64,000 nucleotides of DNA from Monocercomonoides exilis PA203 (taxonomy: Eukaryota > Protista > Preaxostyla). This document shows positions 53,401-62,766 of this stretch, piece by piece; the first letter of the stretch is position 1; every line of letters begins with the position of its first letter. Made by a program: the position numbers and the translations under genes. The stretch covers positions 1,364,001 through 1,428,000 of the forward strand of contig LSRY02000017.1 of the NCBI GenBank assembly GCA_001643675.2. Reading direction: 5' to 3'. Below the pieces are notes generated by a model that made no database searches, had not been told where the DNA came from, and saw only the letters and a list, made by a program, of their open reading frames with translations.

Positions 53401-55599
53401 ATGAAAATGTTATTCTTACATTTGGCAAATAACATGTTAATTTAACAATGAAGTATTGATGATTTTGAAATTTTTCTTTATTTATTTTTCTTATGACATC
53501 TCATCTGACTTAAAAAATCCAGTAAATTAAAAAAATCTTTCAATTTTTGATAAAACGAACTTTTATAATCTGAAAATTGAATTTTGAAAGTTCGGAATTT
53601 GAATAATCTTTGTTTGATGTGTTTTGAACATAAATAATTATTTTATTTAGGATTATTTGTACAAATTAATAATAAATTAATTTCGAATTTTTTTTTTACT
53701 CAAGAAGTTAGCATCTTCTTTGAAAAATAAAAATAACAAATTTTTTTTAAAATGACCGACAGCAACAAAAAATGGTAAGTCGTGTCGCATAGGTCTGGTG
53801 TATGTGTTTGTTAAATTCCTCATTGAAAATAAAAAAATATTTTTTTATATTTTGAAAACTGATGGCACAATTGTTTTTTCTGTTATTGCTTCAACAAAAA
53901 AATTTTTTTTGATATAAAAATAATTTTCACTTAATTTATTTAAGATAAACATTTCGTATTCGTGAAAAAATCGACTTTTGTTTTAAACTTTGTTAGTTGG
54001 ATATCATTTTAAATTTAACATTTTTTCAAAAAAAAAAAAAAAGAAAGAAAAACAATGAATAAAATATGACAGAATTGTTCGAATATTTTATGTGGAACAA
54101 ATTCCATTAAATCTGAATTTTATTCCATTCGCATTTCATTTTCATCACATTATTTTCACTTTCTTATTTATAATTTTGATTTCAATGTTAACAATGTTTG
54201 ATGAAATTAAAGTCATTTGGAGGGAAATGAGAATAAGACCAAATGAGAATAATGGATTGAACCAATAGTGAGTTTATTCATAAAATGGAAATATGAAAAT
54301 AAGAAAGTGATTATTTGATTCCTAATAATGTCCTAATTTTTTTGAAAAGTTCATTTTGTTCAATTTTCCAAATAAATAAAAATTTCATATTTTGATCAAA
54401 TATCTGTTTTCACTAACGAAACTTCACTTTAATAGATGAAATAACTTGATAATGCTATCATAGACTTTTCTGTGATATTTCGTGAGTGGAAACAGTTAAT
54501 TGATGAAAATATGAAGTTTATTTTTTATTTGAAAATTGAACAAAAGGAAGTTTTCAAAAAAAATATGCTACAGATATCGCACAAAATACCGGACAATATG
54601 GGTCATTATTTTTCATATCGTAACTTTGTTCGAAGAAAGATCTTTTTTTTATTAATTGTGGTAAAAAGAGAAAAAGGCAAAAATACATATTTATAAATGA
54701 ATAGAAAAAGAATCGTGATCGAATTTTAGCAAACCAAGTTAATCTGTGAAAATTGTGAAAATTCCATTATAACATTTAATTTTTGAGTTATTTCTTTTAT
54801 TTGAATTATATGGAATTATGAAGGTTAACAGGCTCAATTATCACTTATAAAAGATTTCAATTTGAGTATGATTCAAGGAAATAACTTTTTTTAATGCTTC
54901 GAATTAACTTTCGTTTGAAAATGAATGATTGATTGATTTATTAAATTTAGAAGCGAAATTGTGAGGTTTATAATTTTGTATTATATTTTTTTTTAACTTT
55001 ATTTATGTTATGAATGACGCACATTCGATTTTTGTCGAATAGAGTTGTTCGTGAGATGCAAATTATATTGGAAAATAAATGTTTTGTTTATTGAATGATT
55101 TAACAAGAAGTGGAATAAAAATGAAGTCAAATCATAATTATTGTATGTTAACATTTCGAACAATTGAGATAAAATGTTAAAAGTGACCTCAATGTTTTGT
55201 AAAGAAATTATTTTATTTTTCATTGTTTTTTGTTTTTTCTTCATTTCAAACATTGGACTTTATTGTTTTAATTGAAAAGTTTTTCGTTTATGAAATTTCC
55301 ACTTCATTTATCTTGATGAGATTATGCATTTATCTTTCCAGTTGTGAGATCAACATGTTTTTGATATATTTTATAGAAGAACTTGCTAAACATAACACAA
55401 TAATTTGATTTCTCATTAAATATATAATTAACTTTAGCAATTCCAAAATATTTATTTCTATTTTCCAGTGCAAAGGTGAAATGAAGAAAAAGATAAAACA
55501 AAAAAAAAAGTGAGGAAAATTACGTGAAATCAATAAATGAGAAAAAGAATCCATCTTTTGCTAAGCTTCGTTTTATTTACATGCATAAGGAGAATTTAT

Positions 55600-56810
55600 T
55601 GTTTCTATTCAGTCTGCTCCAGAAACATGAAAAGTTGACAAAAAAAACCTTCCCCCATCACAATATGTTTTGCATTTCTGGAACTCGCAGCCGCTGATCC
55701 AGACACACGAAGTAATACAATAAGCTACATCCCTCCTCCAGTATGATTTTGAGCAGTACATCCATCGAACGAGTTGTTTTCGATTTTGATTGAATTAATT
55801 GAATTGCACATAATTCCTCCACCATAAGCATATGAATAGCAGTTGTTGAATGAACAAAATTTCACTGAAAGTGTTCCCGATCCAAGGTTATACATGTGAA
55901 TCGCCCCTCTACTTGATATTCCATCTGAGACAGAATATTGATTTTCAGTTGTAATTGACCCATTCCACACGCACCAAGTGAATGAATTCGCCCCATTGTC
56001 TGCAATCTGCTGTCTCCCTGGTTTCGATGGATTCCCTTCACTCCCGCTGACTGCAACATTCTGAGACCGATAGCACATGACAAACGAGGTGTTCGAGGCA
56101 TCCAAGGAAGATGAGGGGCTGTTGAGCGAGGAGACAATGCCCCATCATACACATCCCACACTGATACAAATTCACACCCACTCATCAGAAATGATGTTTG
56201 GCCCAACCCTTCACCCAGATGTGTTGTTTTCTGTGGATCTGTGGAGATGTTGAAGAAGGTCAGCTGCGTGAGAGATACAAGGGGTGTCAGGGGAGGCGCC
56301 AGAAACGGGGCTGAAGACACACAAAAAGATGAGAAATGAATCTCACTCACCAATACATTCCCTCCTCCTTCGCTTTCTTCTTCTCTTCCTTCTCCTCTTC
56401 CTTCTCTACCTCTTCTTCCTCCACCTTCTTGTTGTCCTCCTCTCCCTCCTCCTTCATCTCTTCCTCCTCCAATTCCTCCTCCACCTTCTCTCTCACTCTT
56501 CGTCAGCCCCATCATCCCCTCTCCTCCAAACAGTCTCCCACACACATTTCCTCCCCTTCCAACCCCCCTAAGCGTGATGTTCCAAAACACCCCTCTGCAC
56601 CCGCCCAGCTCAAACACCCCCGCCTCCTTGCCTCTCCCCATCTCCACACCACATCCCCTCACCACAACCACACTCCCCCTCATTCCACACACAATCCTCC
56701 CAATTTCATCTCCAATCAGCTCAATCCCCTTCAACTCAACCATCATGCTCCATAACTCCCTCACAAAAAAATACTCATCTTCTTCCTTTTTCCAACTTTT
56801 TTTCAAATTT
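55600..56810 (-). pseudogene. Captured, frameshifted fragment of a beta-helix surface-protein gene (transposon cargo)
   Basis: ORF 55862-56806 (SFLMSGCEFVSVWDVYDG) shifts frame into ORF 55725-56105 (ASNTSFVMCYR...RGAIHM...SVKFCSFNNC...GGGI...GGGM*), then a premature TAG. Confidence 0.75.
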
Positions 56811-57699
56811 CTCTAAAAAATCATATCTCTGATTTTCCCCTTCCCTTCTTTCTTCGCCTTATTCAAATTTTCTCTTTCAATCGAACTTCCAAAATATTAT
56901 CTTCTTCTTCTCAATCATATGCCAAATTTCTTCTTTTGCTGTATCATCTATTCCTTGATCTCATTTTCGGCTTTTAATAAGATTCACCGTAAATGTCTTC
57001 CAAAACCATCAAAAAAATATCTTCTTCTCTTTTCCTTTCATTTATATTTTGCGCCCGCTCACTCCACCAAACGCCTTCCAATTATTATATCCTGATTTCT
57101 TTTAATGCATCCAATATCCCCATCTTCTCATATTCCTTGTTCATTCGTTGTCGTTGAACGTTCTTGCAAAAATCCTAGTTTCACAAAAAAATAATATTTG
57201 AAAAAACATAATTAAAAAAAATATAAATACACACCGTTATAATGATCATTCTTCACCGACTTCATTCTCCTCCCCCAAATATTTCCTTTCTGCCTATAAA
57301 TTCCATCTTTCCAGCCTTCGCTTCCCTTCTGCTTCCTCAAAAAACATTAATCAGCTAAAGCCCAACTTCTTGTTGCTTCTTCTCAAATAACCTCCACAAA
57401 CCCTTTTCTTAAAAATATCGAAGGGGAAGATGAAGATGAAGAAGCAGATGAATTAGAGGAGAGCTCAGACTTTTCGAAGTCCATGAAGGCGAAAATGATA
57501 ATAACCAAGAAGAAGATTTCACATAAAAATATTTTCTTTTGTTGTGGTGGTGCAAACGAAAACATGATGGTGATAATGACGGTGAAGAAGAAAATGAGGA
57601 GCATGAGGAAGATGTGGAAGATGAAGAAGGCGAAGAAATGATGTGACAAACAATTCTTTTCGCAATTCAATCATATTTCATAAGATCTTGAACATCCCC

Positions 57700-58550
57700 C
57701 AAAACATCCCATTTCCACAGCTCACTTAAAACTCTTCACAAAATCTCATTCCCAAATGTTATGCCTGATCCTTCCATCCAAATCATTTCATTCGGCCATC
57801 CACTGCTCATTCCTCTGCCTTTTCTTCGCCATTGCCCTCCCCTTTCCCCTCACAATTCCAGAGCGATGGCTGCTCTCAGTTTCTTGTCTTTGCTATTCTC
57901 CTCCTCCATCCACCTCACAATATTCTCCGAAAACAACACCCCTCTCCTTTTATTCATCTTTCTCGCCCTCTTCCAGAAATTCCTTCCCCTCCTCTTTCCC
58001 TTCTCATCCTCCACACAGCCTGTCCTCACCATTCCCCTTTCCATCGCTTCTCCGCTCCATCGCCTCTCTGGTGAACGGCTTCTCCCATCGCAGCAGTCTT
58101 CTCCTGAAAGTCCTCTCGCCCTTTGAAGACACACCAAACAAAATGGCTGCGCCTCCAACACACAGCCCGATAATCCATCTGCCAACAAGATGGAGGGCAA
58201 TGATCAGCTGCGCGAGGCTATCCTGACAAGAGATACAGAAGCGGAGGCGGCGAGCATCCAGTCGGAGATGCTTGGCCAGTCGCTCCTGCGGAAACCGCTC
58301 CACAACTACCCTATGCACAATCTGCTGTTGTTGTTGTTGCTGCTGCCATCGCTTGGCAAAGAAGAGCTGCCTGTGTTCTTCAGACACCACCCGATGGATG
58401 TGACTGCAGCGTTGCAATGGTGTTGGTGCGGCAGAGGAGAAGAGAAGAGAAGAGATGAGATGAGATGAGATGATGTGCAGTTGCACTCGATTAGCTGAGA
58501 GTTCAATGGCTGTGCAGTGTCTGCTGCAGCTGAATTCTTTAAAAACAAAC
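57700..58550 (-). pseudogene. Second decayed GC-rich gene fragment inside the transposon, possibly from the surface-protein family
   Basis: One frame with scattered stops reads NAAVTSIGWCLKNTGSSSL...ASASVSLVRIASRS*SLPSILLADGLSGCVLE. Coding-like composition but no intact gene. Confidence 0.4.
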
Positions 58551-60858
58551 CAAAGAAGAAGAAGAAGAAGAAGGCGAAGAAGAAAAAAAGAAAGAAAATG
58601 GTTGCGATGAAGTTAAAGGCATCAACGAACGTGGTGGCATCACCTGTTTTGTCTCTACGGGATTAAGTCCGAGTGCTTCGCAGCTCCTTCATTCCTTTGC
58701 AGCCGTCCTTCTAAAGCTCCTCCTTTCCATCGCTCTCTCACACAACCCATTCCTGCTTTTCTATTTTCGTTCCTCTTCCTGCCGCGGCAACGCCTCAAAG
58801 CACCTGTCGGAGTCTTCATCATTCTCTCAGGAATCCCCTTCAACTTTGCCTCCTTCTCCATTTAGAATACAGCTTTCCCTTTTCATATGCATCCCTTACT
58901 TTCCCCGCCTAGTGCTTAAATGTTTTCAGCCTCTGCTTCTTTCATTTCTGCTTCACATTTCTCGAAAGATGCTAACAAAACAAACAAATATACAAATCAA
59001 CAAATACATAAATAGTAAAATAAATGAATGAATATACAAAATTACACATATATCTAATTGTTGATTACCTTCTGAATTTTTCTTCTTTGTTAATCCATTT
59101 GACCAAATAGCTAATATAACATCAAATAGTACGAAGGCTTCATTTTTCTTTTTTTTTTTAAATAAAAATCTTCAAAGCTTCTTTCGAACAACTCTATTCG
59201 ACAAAAATCGAATGTGCGTCATTCATAACATAAATAAAGTTAAAAAAAAATATAATACAAAATTATAAACCTCACAATTTCGCTTCTAAATTTAATAAAT
59301 CAATCAATCATTCATTTTCAAACGAAAGTTAATTCGAAGCATTAAAAAAAGTTATTTCCTTGAATCATACTCAAATTGAAATCTTTTATAAGTGATAATT
59401 GAGCCTGTTAACCTTCATAATTCCATATAATTCAAATAAAAGAAATAACTCAAAAATTAAATGTTATAATGGAATTTTCACAATTTTCACAGATTAACTT
59501 GGTTTGCTAAAATTCGATCACGATTCTTTTTCTATTCATTTATAAATATGTATTTTTGCCTTTTTCTCTTTTTACCACAATTAATAAAAAAAAGATCTTT
59601 CTTCGAACAAAGTTACGATATGAAAAATAATGACCCATATCGATTTCACAATAGCTGCAAGAGGAATAATTCTATTAATTTTCCTCTAAATATATCTCAT
59701 CAATACTTACTCATTTGATAAACAAAACTTTCACAATAGCCACATTTGTGCTCAGAAAAATTTATTTTTTAAATCTCGGAGAAACTTTTTATCCTTATTC
59801 TCCTGGAATCAAATAATTATTTTTTCTGAGCACAAACGAAGCTGTTTAGAAAGTCTCGTTTATCAAATGAGTTTGTATTAATGAGATATATTTTAAGGAA
59901 ATTTTTCAGAATTATACCTCTTGCGGTTATTGAGAAATCGATCTTGTCCGGTATTTTGTGCAATGTCCGGTATTTTATGCGATATCTGTATATCTCAAAA
60001 AAACAACTATTTTGTGAAAAAGTTCCTGAATAAACTATTTTCAAATTTATTTCAAAAATAATAATTATTTTTTGAGTTTTTTTGTCTTTGTCATTTTGAT
60101 GATTTTTTTTTTGTGCAACTGAGAAACAATGATGAAATCAATAAACAAAATGATATGGGGCAAAACATTTCGCATCAGGCATTTTCATTGAAAAATTATG
60201 GATCTTTGATGAACTTTTTGTAATCAAAAAAATACAAAAAAAATGGGTTTCTTTATTGAAACAAATGTGAAATCCCATAACATTTTTATGTTATGTCAAC
60301 GATGCTTGTATGCAGTTATGAAAATCAAATTTGTTTTGAAATCCAAGTGAGTTTTATAATGTTATGAGAAAAACAATTTTTTCGTTCTTTGTGCAAAAAA
60401 AGCTTGAAAGTCCGTATTTTCCCCCATATAATAGATGATTCCTTCTCATTGAACTGTGACAAAAGCTCTATGTCCTCCTTACGTTGATGAAAATATACAA
60501 ATTGACCCCCCTGACAGAAATAATTTTTTGATAATTTTTAAAATAGTTGCTTTGCTTTATTTTCTTGTGAAAGTGAAAATAGAATATTTCCATCAAGTTT
60601 TCTTTTCAACTCACAAAATTTCACCATCATGGAAACAGTTTCATTGTCAATGGTTTGTTTCTTTAATGGTGGAATTTGGTGAGTTTGTATGAAAAATTGA
60701 TGAAATTTTTGAATTTTCATTTTTTCCTAAAAATGAGACAAAAGGAACTTTTCAAAAAAATCACACATATTTGTTATTCTTTCTTTAAAGAAAAGAGTGT
60801 TTAATTTTTTGATTCATTTGTTTTTTGTATTTTTTCTAGAATTTATGCATTCTGTTTA

Positions 60859-61766: not shown

Positions 61767-62766
61767 GGGTGATTTTTTTATCCGGACATTTTTTTTAATC
61801 CGGACATTTTTTTTTATTGGCGTTTCTCACTAAATAAAAACAAAAAATAGAAAAGGCATATTGCATAAGGTTTGAATACGTATTTAATGTTCACACAAAA
61901 AAATTTTTATGTCAATTTTTGTTTTTGATGAAGATCTTAGGAATTTTTAATTTATTTTTGATCATTTGTTTTGTCCATTATGGACTATCTTTCTTTTTTT
62001 GTTTATTTTTAACTATAAGTTCATGAAACATACTCAATGACGTTTTATTATTCCAAATGTTATTTGTTTTTAACTATTTTTTCATAAGTTTTTCGCATTT
62101 CATCGTTTTTATCAAAAAATTTGAAAAACTGAAGTTTTCTGAATTTTTGTATGATATAATGATTTAAATTTTTAATAGGTTTGTAAATAAGATAAAAACA
62201 TATTGTTGTTTTAATTTATTAGTCATATTTGATTGAATCAAAAATGAAATGAGCAAATATGTTAAAATCAAAAATTGATTGATGCAACTTCAGCAACAAC
62301 ATTTCACAAAATTTTAATGTGGTGAATGCTTAACTCAAGTTGTTCAATTTTCATACGCATCACTTTAAATATCAAATAAACATTGTATCTTTATGAATTT
62401 TCAGTTTTTCAAATTTTTTGATAAAAACGATGAAATGCGAAAAACTTATGAAAAAATAGTTAAAAACAAATAACATTTGGAATAATAAAACGTCATTGAG
62501 TATGTTTCATGAACTTATAGTTAAAAATAAACAAAAAAAGAAAGATAGTCCATAATGGACAAAACAAATGATCAAAAATAAATTAAAAATTCCTAAGATC
62601 TTCATCAAAAACAAAAATTGACATAAAAATTTTTTTGTGTGAACATTAAATACGTATTCAAACCTTATGCAATATGCCTTTTCTATTTTTTGTTTTTATT
62701 TAGTGAGAAACGCCAATAAAAAAAAATGTCCGGATTAAAAAAAATGTCCGGATAAAAAAATCACCC
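61767..62766. mobile_element. 1,000-bp foldback element: 367-bp TIRs, 266-bp spacer, TA flanks
   Basis: 61767-62133 is the reverse complement of 62400-62766. TA|GGGTG...CACCC|TA with a doubled subterminal ATCCGGACATTTT. Confidence 0.92.

Follow-up and report, generated by a model that had tools for sequence, protein, structure and literature searches.

A Monocercomonoides exilis transposon family with long terminal inverted repeats and a beta-helix gene piece as cargo

The window analysed in this study is a 64,000-nucleotide stretch of contig C11 (C11:1364001-1428000) of the oxymonad Monocercomonoides exilis PA203. It contains a 5-kb unit with long terminal inverted repeats (TIRs) that encloses a decayed piece of a host gene. 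A first-pass annotation, made from the letters of the window alone, had taken this unit for a gene-capturing transposon comparable to the Pack-MULEs of plants. The question raised by the locus is whether the unit is a mobile element at all and, if so, what kind of element it is, how it came by its gene piece, and whether its well-preserved repeats reveal when it last moved. We find that it is a real mobile DNA element of 5 kb and one ordinary copy of a large, undescribed M. exilis transposon family. It is probably a non-autonomous, Sola-like cut-and-paste element with beta-helix cargo of ancestral origin, whose arms and cargo are both subject to gene conversion and whose movement depends on larger relatives carrying an open reading frame (ORF) with a USP domain.

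Repeats occupy 46% of the M. exilis assembly, and 35% of the assembly is listed as "unclassified"; DNA transposons are reported there without a family-level account (PMC8767320). Our genome-wide searches covered the 82.3-Mb assembly of 101 contigs. Literature searches found no account of elements of this type in oxymonads.

Structure and mobility of the 5-kb unit

A repeat search of the window returned two inverted arms, at 54596-55059 and 59177-59640, that are 464 nt long including an ATAT tetranucleotide, 99% complementary, and separated by 4117 nt. Mismatches occur only at arm positions 457, 458, and 462, numbered from the outer A of ATAT, and the 452 nt that follow ATAT are therefore identical between the arms, just as the first-pass annotation had reported. 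The unit proper spans 54600-59636 (5,037 bp), with ATAT outside both ends as the left (54596-54599) and right (59637-59640, by flank reading) target-site duplication (TSD). Both arms open with ATAT followed by GGGTCATT. Counted without the tetranucleotide, the left TIR (54600-55059, plus strand) and the right TIR (59177-59636, minus strand, from repeat and terminus searches) are 460 nt each. Stretches rich in A+T and in G+C alternate in the interior, where G+C reaches 54%. Assignment to the foldback elements was rejected because the arms account for no more than 18% of its length and a target duplication is present.

ATAT is a palindrome, and in the window copy alone a TSD is not separable from an extension of the inverted repeat. 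Two comparisons, one within the family and one with empty sites, show that it derives from the target. For the first, the 464-nt arm was found to have at least 41 genomic matches, with at least 14 inverted pairs that lie on many contigs and are mostly 2-10 kb apart. The outer 36 nt of the TIR occur 59 times (32 forward and 27 reverse, with 32 exact), compared to no occurrence of a reversed control. We read 22 paired copies in sequence and scored the flanks in the 21 pairs with recognisable ends. Four-nucleotide flanks match in 17 of these pairs (ATAT/ATAT in 13, ATTT/ATTT in three, and AGTT/AGTT in one) and disagree in four, at a base composition where flanking 4-mers would match by chance in about 0.8% of cases. 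The four ATTT and AGTT pairs are non-palindromic and are repeated directly rather than inverted, and thus the flank bases come from the target and lie outside the inverted repeat.

The second comparison is possible because the window element sits inside another repeat, a TA-flanked foldback miniature inverted-repeat transposable element (MITE) that it splits in two. As judged by direct reading, the left 25 nt of this MITE (54571-54595) follow a TA at 54569-54570, so that this part with its flank spans 54569-54595. The remainder begins at 59641, runs to 59988, and is closed by a second TA at 59989-59990. The hairpin arms of the MITE (59624-59783 and 59798-59957, 160 nt) are 79% identical. The MITE site is found 256 times elsewhere in the genome, and the insertion point always holds exactly 4 nt, mostly AGAT and sometimes ATAT. 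The net gain at insertion is therefore 4 nt, and the window insertion would have struck an ATAT variant of the site. Some short-read contigs join 54595/6 to 59639 with only G or AG between; these contigs, which skip 5 kb, were considered as an empty allele and rejected because they represent paralogous MITE copies. The internal site motif of the foldback MITE often occurs in inverted pairs about 310 bp apart.

These data define a TIR transposon family of about 30 elements that are 2-11 kb in length and have TIRs of 350-930 bp. As the first-pass annotation had anticipated, the TIR is a multi-locus sequence, and other copies likewise enclose a beta-helix gene. Three copies on separate contigs (L042, L043, and L044 on C27, C7, and C15) have backbones that are 97-100% identical, and so the family must have moved recently. 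In the family alignment, conservation is 0.96-1.0 over the outer 40 nt of the TIR compared to about 0.8 for the remainder, and this near-invariance fits selection for transposase recognition in lineages that are still moving.

Could the unit instead be a local inverted duplication, or an error of assembly, rather than a mobile element? Among the short contigs examined, none covers the structure from one end to the other, which counts in favor of this explanation. Furthermore, large palindromes do form around such genes in this genome, as seen at the L031 locus described below and in many inverted gene pairs with equal search scores. However, short contigs from sequencing runs of the source sample match the arms, both flanking junction regions, and most of the interior without differences. 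An inverted duplication would also hardly account for some 30 loci that hold this sharp-ended unit, for the direct repeats of 4 nt at its flanks, or for a precise empty-site counterpart. An assembly artefact is unlikely given that the assembly is nanopore-based and that some 30 loci share the same architecture. We therefore consider this alternative very improbable and treat the unit as a transposon in what follows.

Concerted evolution of the arms

The first-pass annotation had read the pristine TIRs as a sign that the window element moved recently. Comparison across the family does not sustain this reading. When the two arms of one element are compared over their first 340 nt, identity is 98.5-100% (median 99.7%), with C17b (77%) as the sole exception; over their full 423 nt, the arms of L043 are 96.2% identical. 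Between elements, the median TIR identity is 77.5%, and copies differ by 10-30%. The pair L034 and L035 is instructive in that these two copies differ from each other by 3.7% in the TIR and by 6.6% overall, whereas identity between the two arms of one copy is 99.4% and 100%. Arms that evolved independently should differ as much as the copies do, and hence they have been homogenised in place.

In three copies, arm identity extends past the element end. It reaches 24 nt past the ends of L035, and at L031 inverted identity extends outward from the element by at least 500 nt, where a helicase gene lies in two inverted halves, with 4-nt flanks that are themselves inverted (ATTT/AAAT). L045 contains a MITE insertion at an internal ATAT, of which 35 nt are found in both arms. 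L031, on contig C80, occupies the center of a larger palindrome, in which the flanks C80:1137457-1138942 and 1144741-1146227 are inverted copies that correspond to residues 140-635 of a D5-like helicase.

Gene conversion within an element, or fold-back repair, keeps the two arms of each copy alike. Arm-to-arm gene conversion is familiar from the palindromes of the human Y chromosome and from plastid inverted repeats. As in such large palindromes and inverted repeats, the arms here remain nearly identical while the unit diverges from its relatives. The M. exilis arms differ in that they are only about 0.46 kb long, reside 2-10 kb apart in a mobile element, and in some copies belong to a converted tract that passes the element end. 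Because the arms evolve in concert in place, their identity does not date an insertion, and long-TIR arm identity is unusable as an insertion clock in this family. The nearest relative of the window copy (L032) is 81.5% identical over the whole length, and no close relative was found. The window copy is a decayed, ordinary member of its family, and it is probably old rather than the product of a fresh capture.

A beta-helix gene piece as cargo

The interior ORFs of the window copy contain no Pfam transposase domain, in agreement with the earlier observation that no transposase is recognisable there. Likewise, no transposase of the family's own appeared in the ORF listings of the 22 copies read, for which the Pfam run was made on selected ORFs. 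Since the window element lacks a transposase of its own, it must have been moved in trans. Between the TIRs, four segments can be distinguished. A left subterminal segment (B, 55060-55590) is family-specific and non-coding, and it is followed by the cargo (55456-56803, minus strand). Beyond the cargo lie a variable, G+C-rich, low-complexity middle segment (E, 56804-58552) and a family-specific right subterminal segment (F, 58553-59176). No coding signature was detected in any frame of the interior from 56.8 to 59.2 kb, where ratios of nonsynonymous to synonymous substitution (dN/dS) for the frames of E and F are 0.57-0.99 compared to 0.33 for the cargo as a control.

As judged by blastx and tblastn against M. 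exilis proteins and an ORF from the L039 copy, the cargo is the N-terminal portion (about 380 codons) of a beta-helix family gene truncated at its 3' end. It corresponds to residues 1 to about 378 of M. exilis proteins of 600-700 aa (here called C42-type) with 70-80% identity, but two frameshifts, near 56135-56141 and 55728-55731, spread it over three frames. In the window copy it is a pseudogene. The first-pass annotation was correct about a frameshifted beta-helix cargo, except that there is one piece rather than several. All protein relatives found are MONOS_ proteins of M. exilis. A longer, intact version of 448 codons in L039 is annotated as MONOS_15980, and Pfam assigns it to no family; another intact cargo gene, MONOS_6381, lies in L032. 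A structural model of the L039 protein, built from an alignment of 30 relatives, reaches a pLDDT of 86-94 at residues 150-300 and predicts a right-handed parallel beta-helix. The top 50 structural matches to the model are all beta-helix proteins (Z 15-19 over 220-270 residues).

The gene family from which the cargo derives is very large. At least 1915 candidate loci are present in the genome; the longest open frames reach 3800 codons, and many of the genes form inverted pairs. Such pairs lie about 5 kb apart and have identical search scores (C71:60271-67039, C42:448236-454191, C53:344766-351585, C80:1180219-1186229, and others); they are probably palindromic duplications. At window positions 55676-56463, we observed high-depth contigs from a metatranscriptome run labelled "synthetic metagenome" that carry 3-7 differences each. 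These RNA contigs probably come from paralogous beta-helix genes and not from the window copy.

In 11 copies of the element, beta-helix homology ends at one shared point, 986-1035 nt from one end. This common truncation point indicates that the cargo was inherited, having been acquired before the lineage radiated, and the earlier proposal that the window element itself captured a gene is not supported. A single segment of a beta-helix family gene would have been acquired ancestrally together with its flanks, and most of the family would carry a shortened form of it. The cargo of L039 and C73 runs on for a further 140 codons. Segment B has 21 genomic matches, and all but one lie between paired family ends; the exception (C25:1042709) is about 2 kb from a lone end. 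Of the 17 long matches to segment F, 16 are within elements, and the remaining one (C42:493873-494382) lies upstream of a beta-helix family gene, at a distance of about 1 kb. This last site, the only one of its kind that lacks TIRs, is a candidate parental locus, though it may also be a relic.

The cargo sequences have a more complex history than that of simple descent. In a tree of 174 shared residues (quick IQ-TREE run), 13 of 14 element copies are intermixed with 23 C42-type genes in one fully supported clade, and the C73 cargo falls in another clade. The mixing of element copies with C42 genes and the separate position of C73 speak against the scheme above, and on these sequences a single cargo acquisition is not proven. 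Element copies are often nearer to "host" genes (80-87%) than to one another. Among element cargo copies dN/dS is 0.27-0.36, compared to 0.6-1.0 for non-coding segments in all frames. The three sister copies L042, L043, and L044 combine near-identical backbones with different cargo, in that all three pairs are only 75-89% alike at element positions 1051-1500. This combination points to cargo that has been overwritten by ectopic gene conversion from diverged paralogues, a process that would also account for the mixed tree and for the low dN/dS. Paralogues overwrite patches of the TIR in the same way.

The suggestion that such elements shuffle the gene family thus gains some support, most directly from the three sister copies that each hold a different cargo. 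The family as a whole carries and reshuffles pieces of the very large beta-helix gene family, and the overwriting of cargo in sister copies offers a concrete route for this shuffling.

These findings bear on a further explanation, in which the unit is a Pack-type element that itself recently captured surface-protein gene fragments and has just moved. The window element is indeed bounded by TIRs, lacks a transposase, and has an interior derived from a host gene. Cargo also varies by subfamily, since L034, L035, C17a, and C17b have no beta-helix part and the C73 copy belongs to another clade, and the sister copies have mosaic cargo. A search for the parent of a 311-aa ORF in the L034 subfamily matched only the ORF itself. 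However, cargo layout and truncation point are common to 11 copies, the best relative of the window copy is only 81.5% identical, and arm identity is a family-wide product of concerted evolution rather than a clock. Moreover, the 8-11-bp target duplication of MULE-type elements is absent. A fresh capture of this kind is therefore improbable.

Pack-TYPE elements have been described as plant elements (PMC8903248, PMC6379663), and the window element falls within the generic definition of a non-autonomous TIR element with host coding DNA inside. Like plant Pack-MULE and Pack-CACTA elements, the M. exilis elements are non-autonomous and have long TIRs, an interior of host-gene origin, and reshuffled cargo (PMC8903248, PMC6379663). 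They differ in their 4-bp duplication (not 8-11 or 3 bp) and in their superfamily. Furthermore, most copies hold one ancestral cargo rather than the results of many independent captures, the turnover of this cargo resembles gene conversion from a huge paralogous family, and the host is an oxymonad. The likeness to a Pack-MULE with a 4-bp TSD that the first-pass annotation drew holds for the non-autonomous TIR type of element, its host-gene interior, and the 4-nt gain, and does not hold with regard to fresh capture. With the M. exilis family, the range of gene-carrying TIR elements comes to include a protist host and a Sola-like superfamily with 4-bp duplications.

Superfamily and likely source of transposase

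The window family can be assigned, as a small branch, to a large superfamily of cut-and-paste DNA transposons whose ends read 5'-GGGTSATTATTTTT and whose insertion at ANNT sites, mostly ATAT, adds 4 nt. About 840 genomic ends match ANNT followed by GGGTSATTATTTTTGAAA within one mismatch, compared to none for a control. Most of these ends belong to MITEs of about 245 bp (one is located at L012:484-740), and ATAT far outnumbers AAAT, ATTT, and AATT among their flanks. Four large elements of 12.8-17.9 kb (C13:1533496-1551469, C14:2060696-2074899, C21:339460-353266, and C16:187702-200560) have ATAT followed by GGGTCATTATTTTTGAAA at both ends. A Pfam UCH search of the genome revealed UCH/USP-domain ORFs of 916, 919, and 576 aa at a constant distance of 3.46 kb from one end in three of these four elements. 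By the Repbase rule, elements share a superfamily if terminal bases 1-11 agree with at most one mismatch and the duplication length is the same. Terminal bases 1-14 are common to the window family, the MITE-type ends, and the large elements. The window family and the large elements also share the duplication length, and on this basis these two belong to one superfamily. The 13-18-kb relatives with a USP-domain ORF of 916-919 aa would then be the likeliest source of transposase for the window family.

Among known superfamilies, Sola has a matching target pattern. A 4-bp AWWT/AWDT target duplication is the hallmark of Sola1, with Sola1 MITEs of insects as the published example (PMC3845634), the duplications of Sola2 elements in dictyostelids include ATAT, AAAT, and ATTT (PMC3627910), and Pfam has no Sola model (PMC5751038). 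The flanks of the window family (ATAT in 13 pairs, ATTT in three, and AGTT in one) agree with this 4-bp preference, with AGTT as the sole exception. Like Sola1 and Sola2, the M. exilis elements have a 4-bp, A+T-rich AWWT duplication, numerous MITE derivatives, and TIRs with GG as the outermost bases. The one published Sola1 MITE terminus compared agrees with the window family at only about 12 of 18 bases. The M. exilis family differs from Sola in having TIRs of hundreds of bases and a candidate autonomous ORF with a USP (UCH) domain. To our knowledge, this domain is not known from Sola elements.

Several observations weigh against this assignment and should be considered together. The likeness to the large elements ends after 14 terminal bases, and a search with the outer 105 nt returned the window-type family only. 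The term "Sola-like" reflects the target pattern, and the ORFs of the large elements are known from their location and UCH domain alone. The AGTT flank, seen in a single pair, lies outside both AWWT and AWDT. In addition, A and T occupy flank positions 1 and 4 in every case, so that a 4-bp ANNT duplication is formally the same as one of 2 bp in an element whose outermost bases are T...A.

This equivalence leads to another candidate origin, namely that the window element is a non-autonomous derivative of the pogo-like elements (Tc1/mariner-pogo, with a DDE_1 transposase) that reside in the same genome. Its ends would then be T-GGGTCAT...ATGACCC-A, only the central dinucleotide (usually TA) would be duplicated, and the outer A and T would reflect a preference for ATAT targets. 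The resident 2.02-kb DDE_1 elements end with TA followed by GGGTCATATTTTT, so that their first seven terminal bases (GGGTCAT) are shared with the window family, and in three of four cases their flanks have the form A-TA...TA-T. Both of these features count against a separate Sola-like origin. An active transposase also appears to be available, given that identity among copies of the DDE_1 element is 93-98.5% for the DNA and as high as 99-100% for the ORF, with some ORFs intact. Moreover, DDE_1 genes occur inside or beside several members of the window family.

Other evidence argues against a pogo-like origin. Duplication of TA is described as strict in pogo elements (PMC3845634), whereas the window family shows a net gain of 4 nt, and four of its 17 intact pairs have a central dinucleotide other than TA (TT in three, GT in one). 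TA directly abuts GGG in the pogo-like copies, but AT does so in the window family. Within positions 1-11 the termini differ at two places, and the duplications are of unequal length; the two groups are therefore not united by the Repbase rule. Finally, each DDE_1 unit in the C32 and C7c copies is a separate insertion, nested in the element and bounded by TA flanks of its own. The resident DDE_1 elements therefore resemble the window family in their GGGTCAT start, A+T-rich ends, and ATAT-like sites, and differ from it in a 2-bp TA duplication that abuts GGG, in their short TIRs, which measure about 30 nt for the C7c insert, and in having their own transposase. Derivation from pogo-like elements is, in our view, unlikely, and we continue to favor a Sola-like superfamily mobilised by the USP-ORF relatives.

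For the same reason, the DDE_1 ORFs of the C32 and C7c copies were rejected as the family transposase; they belong to nested 2-kb pogo-like elements, and copies of the C32 insert elsewhere are 93-98.5% identical. The 2.02-kb pogo-like element itself has a 403-codon DDE_1 ORF and copies on four contigs (L049:255-1463 on C32, L055, L056, and L057), and this family looks recently active. At least 1224 DDE_1 candidates are present in the genome. Beside the pogo-like element at L055 (C36), positions 768-2345 hold a 526-codon frame with reverse transcriptase and RNase H domains.

Other sources were considered and set aside. A 635-aa D5-like helicase ORF (DUF5906/VapE) in the C36 copy was rejected as a family gene because it sits in a nested 4.6-kb element, and no helicase matches were found within the large relatives. 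DIRS elements were rejected because a target duplication is present and the element has no reverse transcriptase or recombinase ORF. Likewise, Polinton/Maverick and Ginger elements were rejected because the genome has practically no rve integrase (a single weak match, below the cut-off) and the duplication is 4 nt, compared to 6 bp for Polintons.

A bolder account would join these observations into one system. In this account, the long-TIR elements would be a working vehicle that scatters beta-helix cassettes and exchanges sequence with about 1900 paralogues by two-way gene conversion. Purifying selection would act on the element copies (dN/dS of about 0.3), the whole would constitute a transposon-based reservoir that diversifies surface proteins, and a Sola-like transposase fused to a deubiquitinase would be its driver. 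We regard this full scenario as doubtful. On a more practical level, the family with its 30 or so cargo elements, and the superfamily around it with about 840 MITE-type ends and a few elements of 13-18 kb, explain part of the 35% of "unclassified" repeats and give them a structure open to annotation.

Additional repeats were noted during this analysis. The nested element in the C36 copy (L037/L038, C36:1034666-1039264) is 4.6 kb long, has 675-bp TIRs that are 99.3% identical, ends with ATAT followed by GGTATATCAGC, and contains the 635-aa D5-like helicase as its single ORF. About 95 candidate loci for this helicase ORF exist in the genome. Another long-TIR family, of MULE or hAT style, is represented at L031:1321-3320 (C80) by a 2-kb element whose TIRs of 524 bp match without a single difference and whose flanks form an 8-bp direct repeat (GATGTTTA). 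In the window, a hairpin-type repeat with 94-nt arms (83% identical) and a 44-nt loop lies just left of the 5-kb element at 54334-54565, and one of its arms is related to 60710-60761. Farther right, at 61767-62766, there is a 1.0-kb non-autonomous pogo-like element that has TA followed by GGGTGATTTTTTTATCCGGACA on both sides and TA flanks; its ends are of the same type as those of the DDE_1 element nested in the C7 copy.

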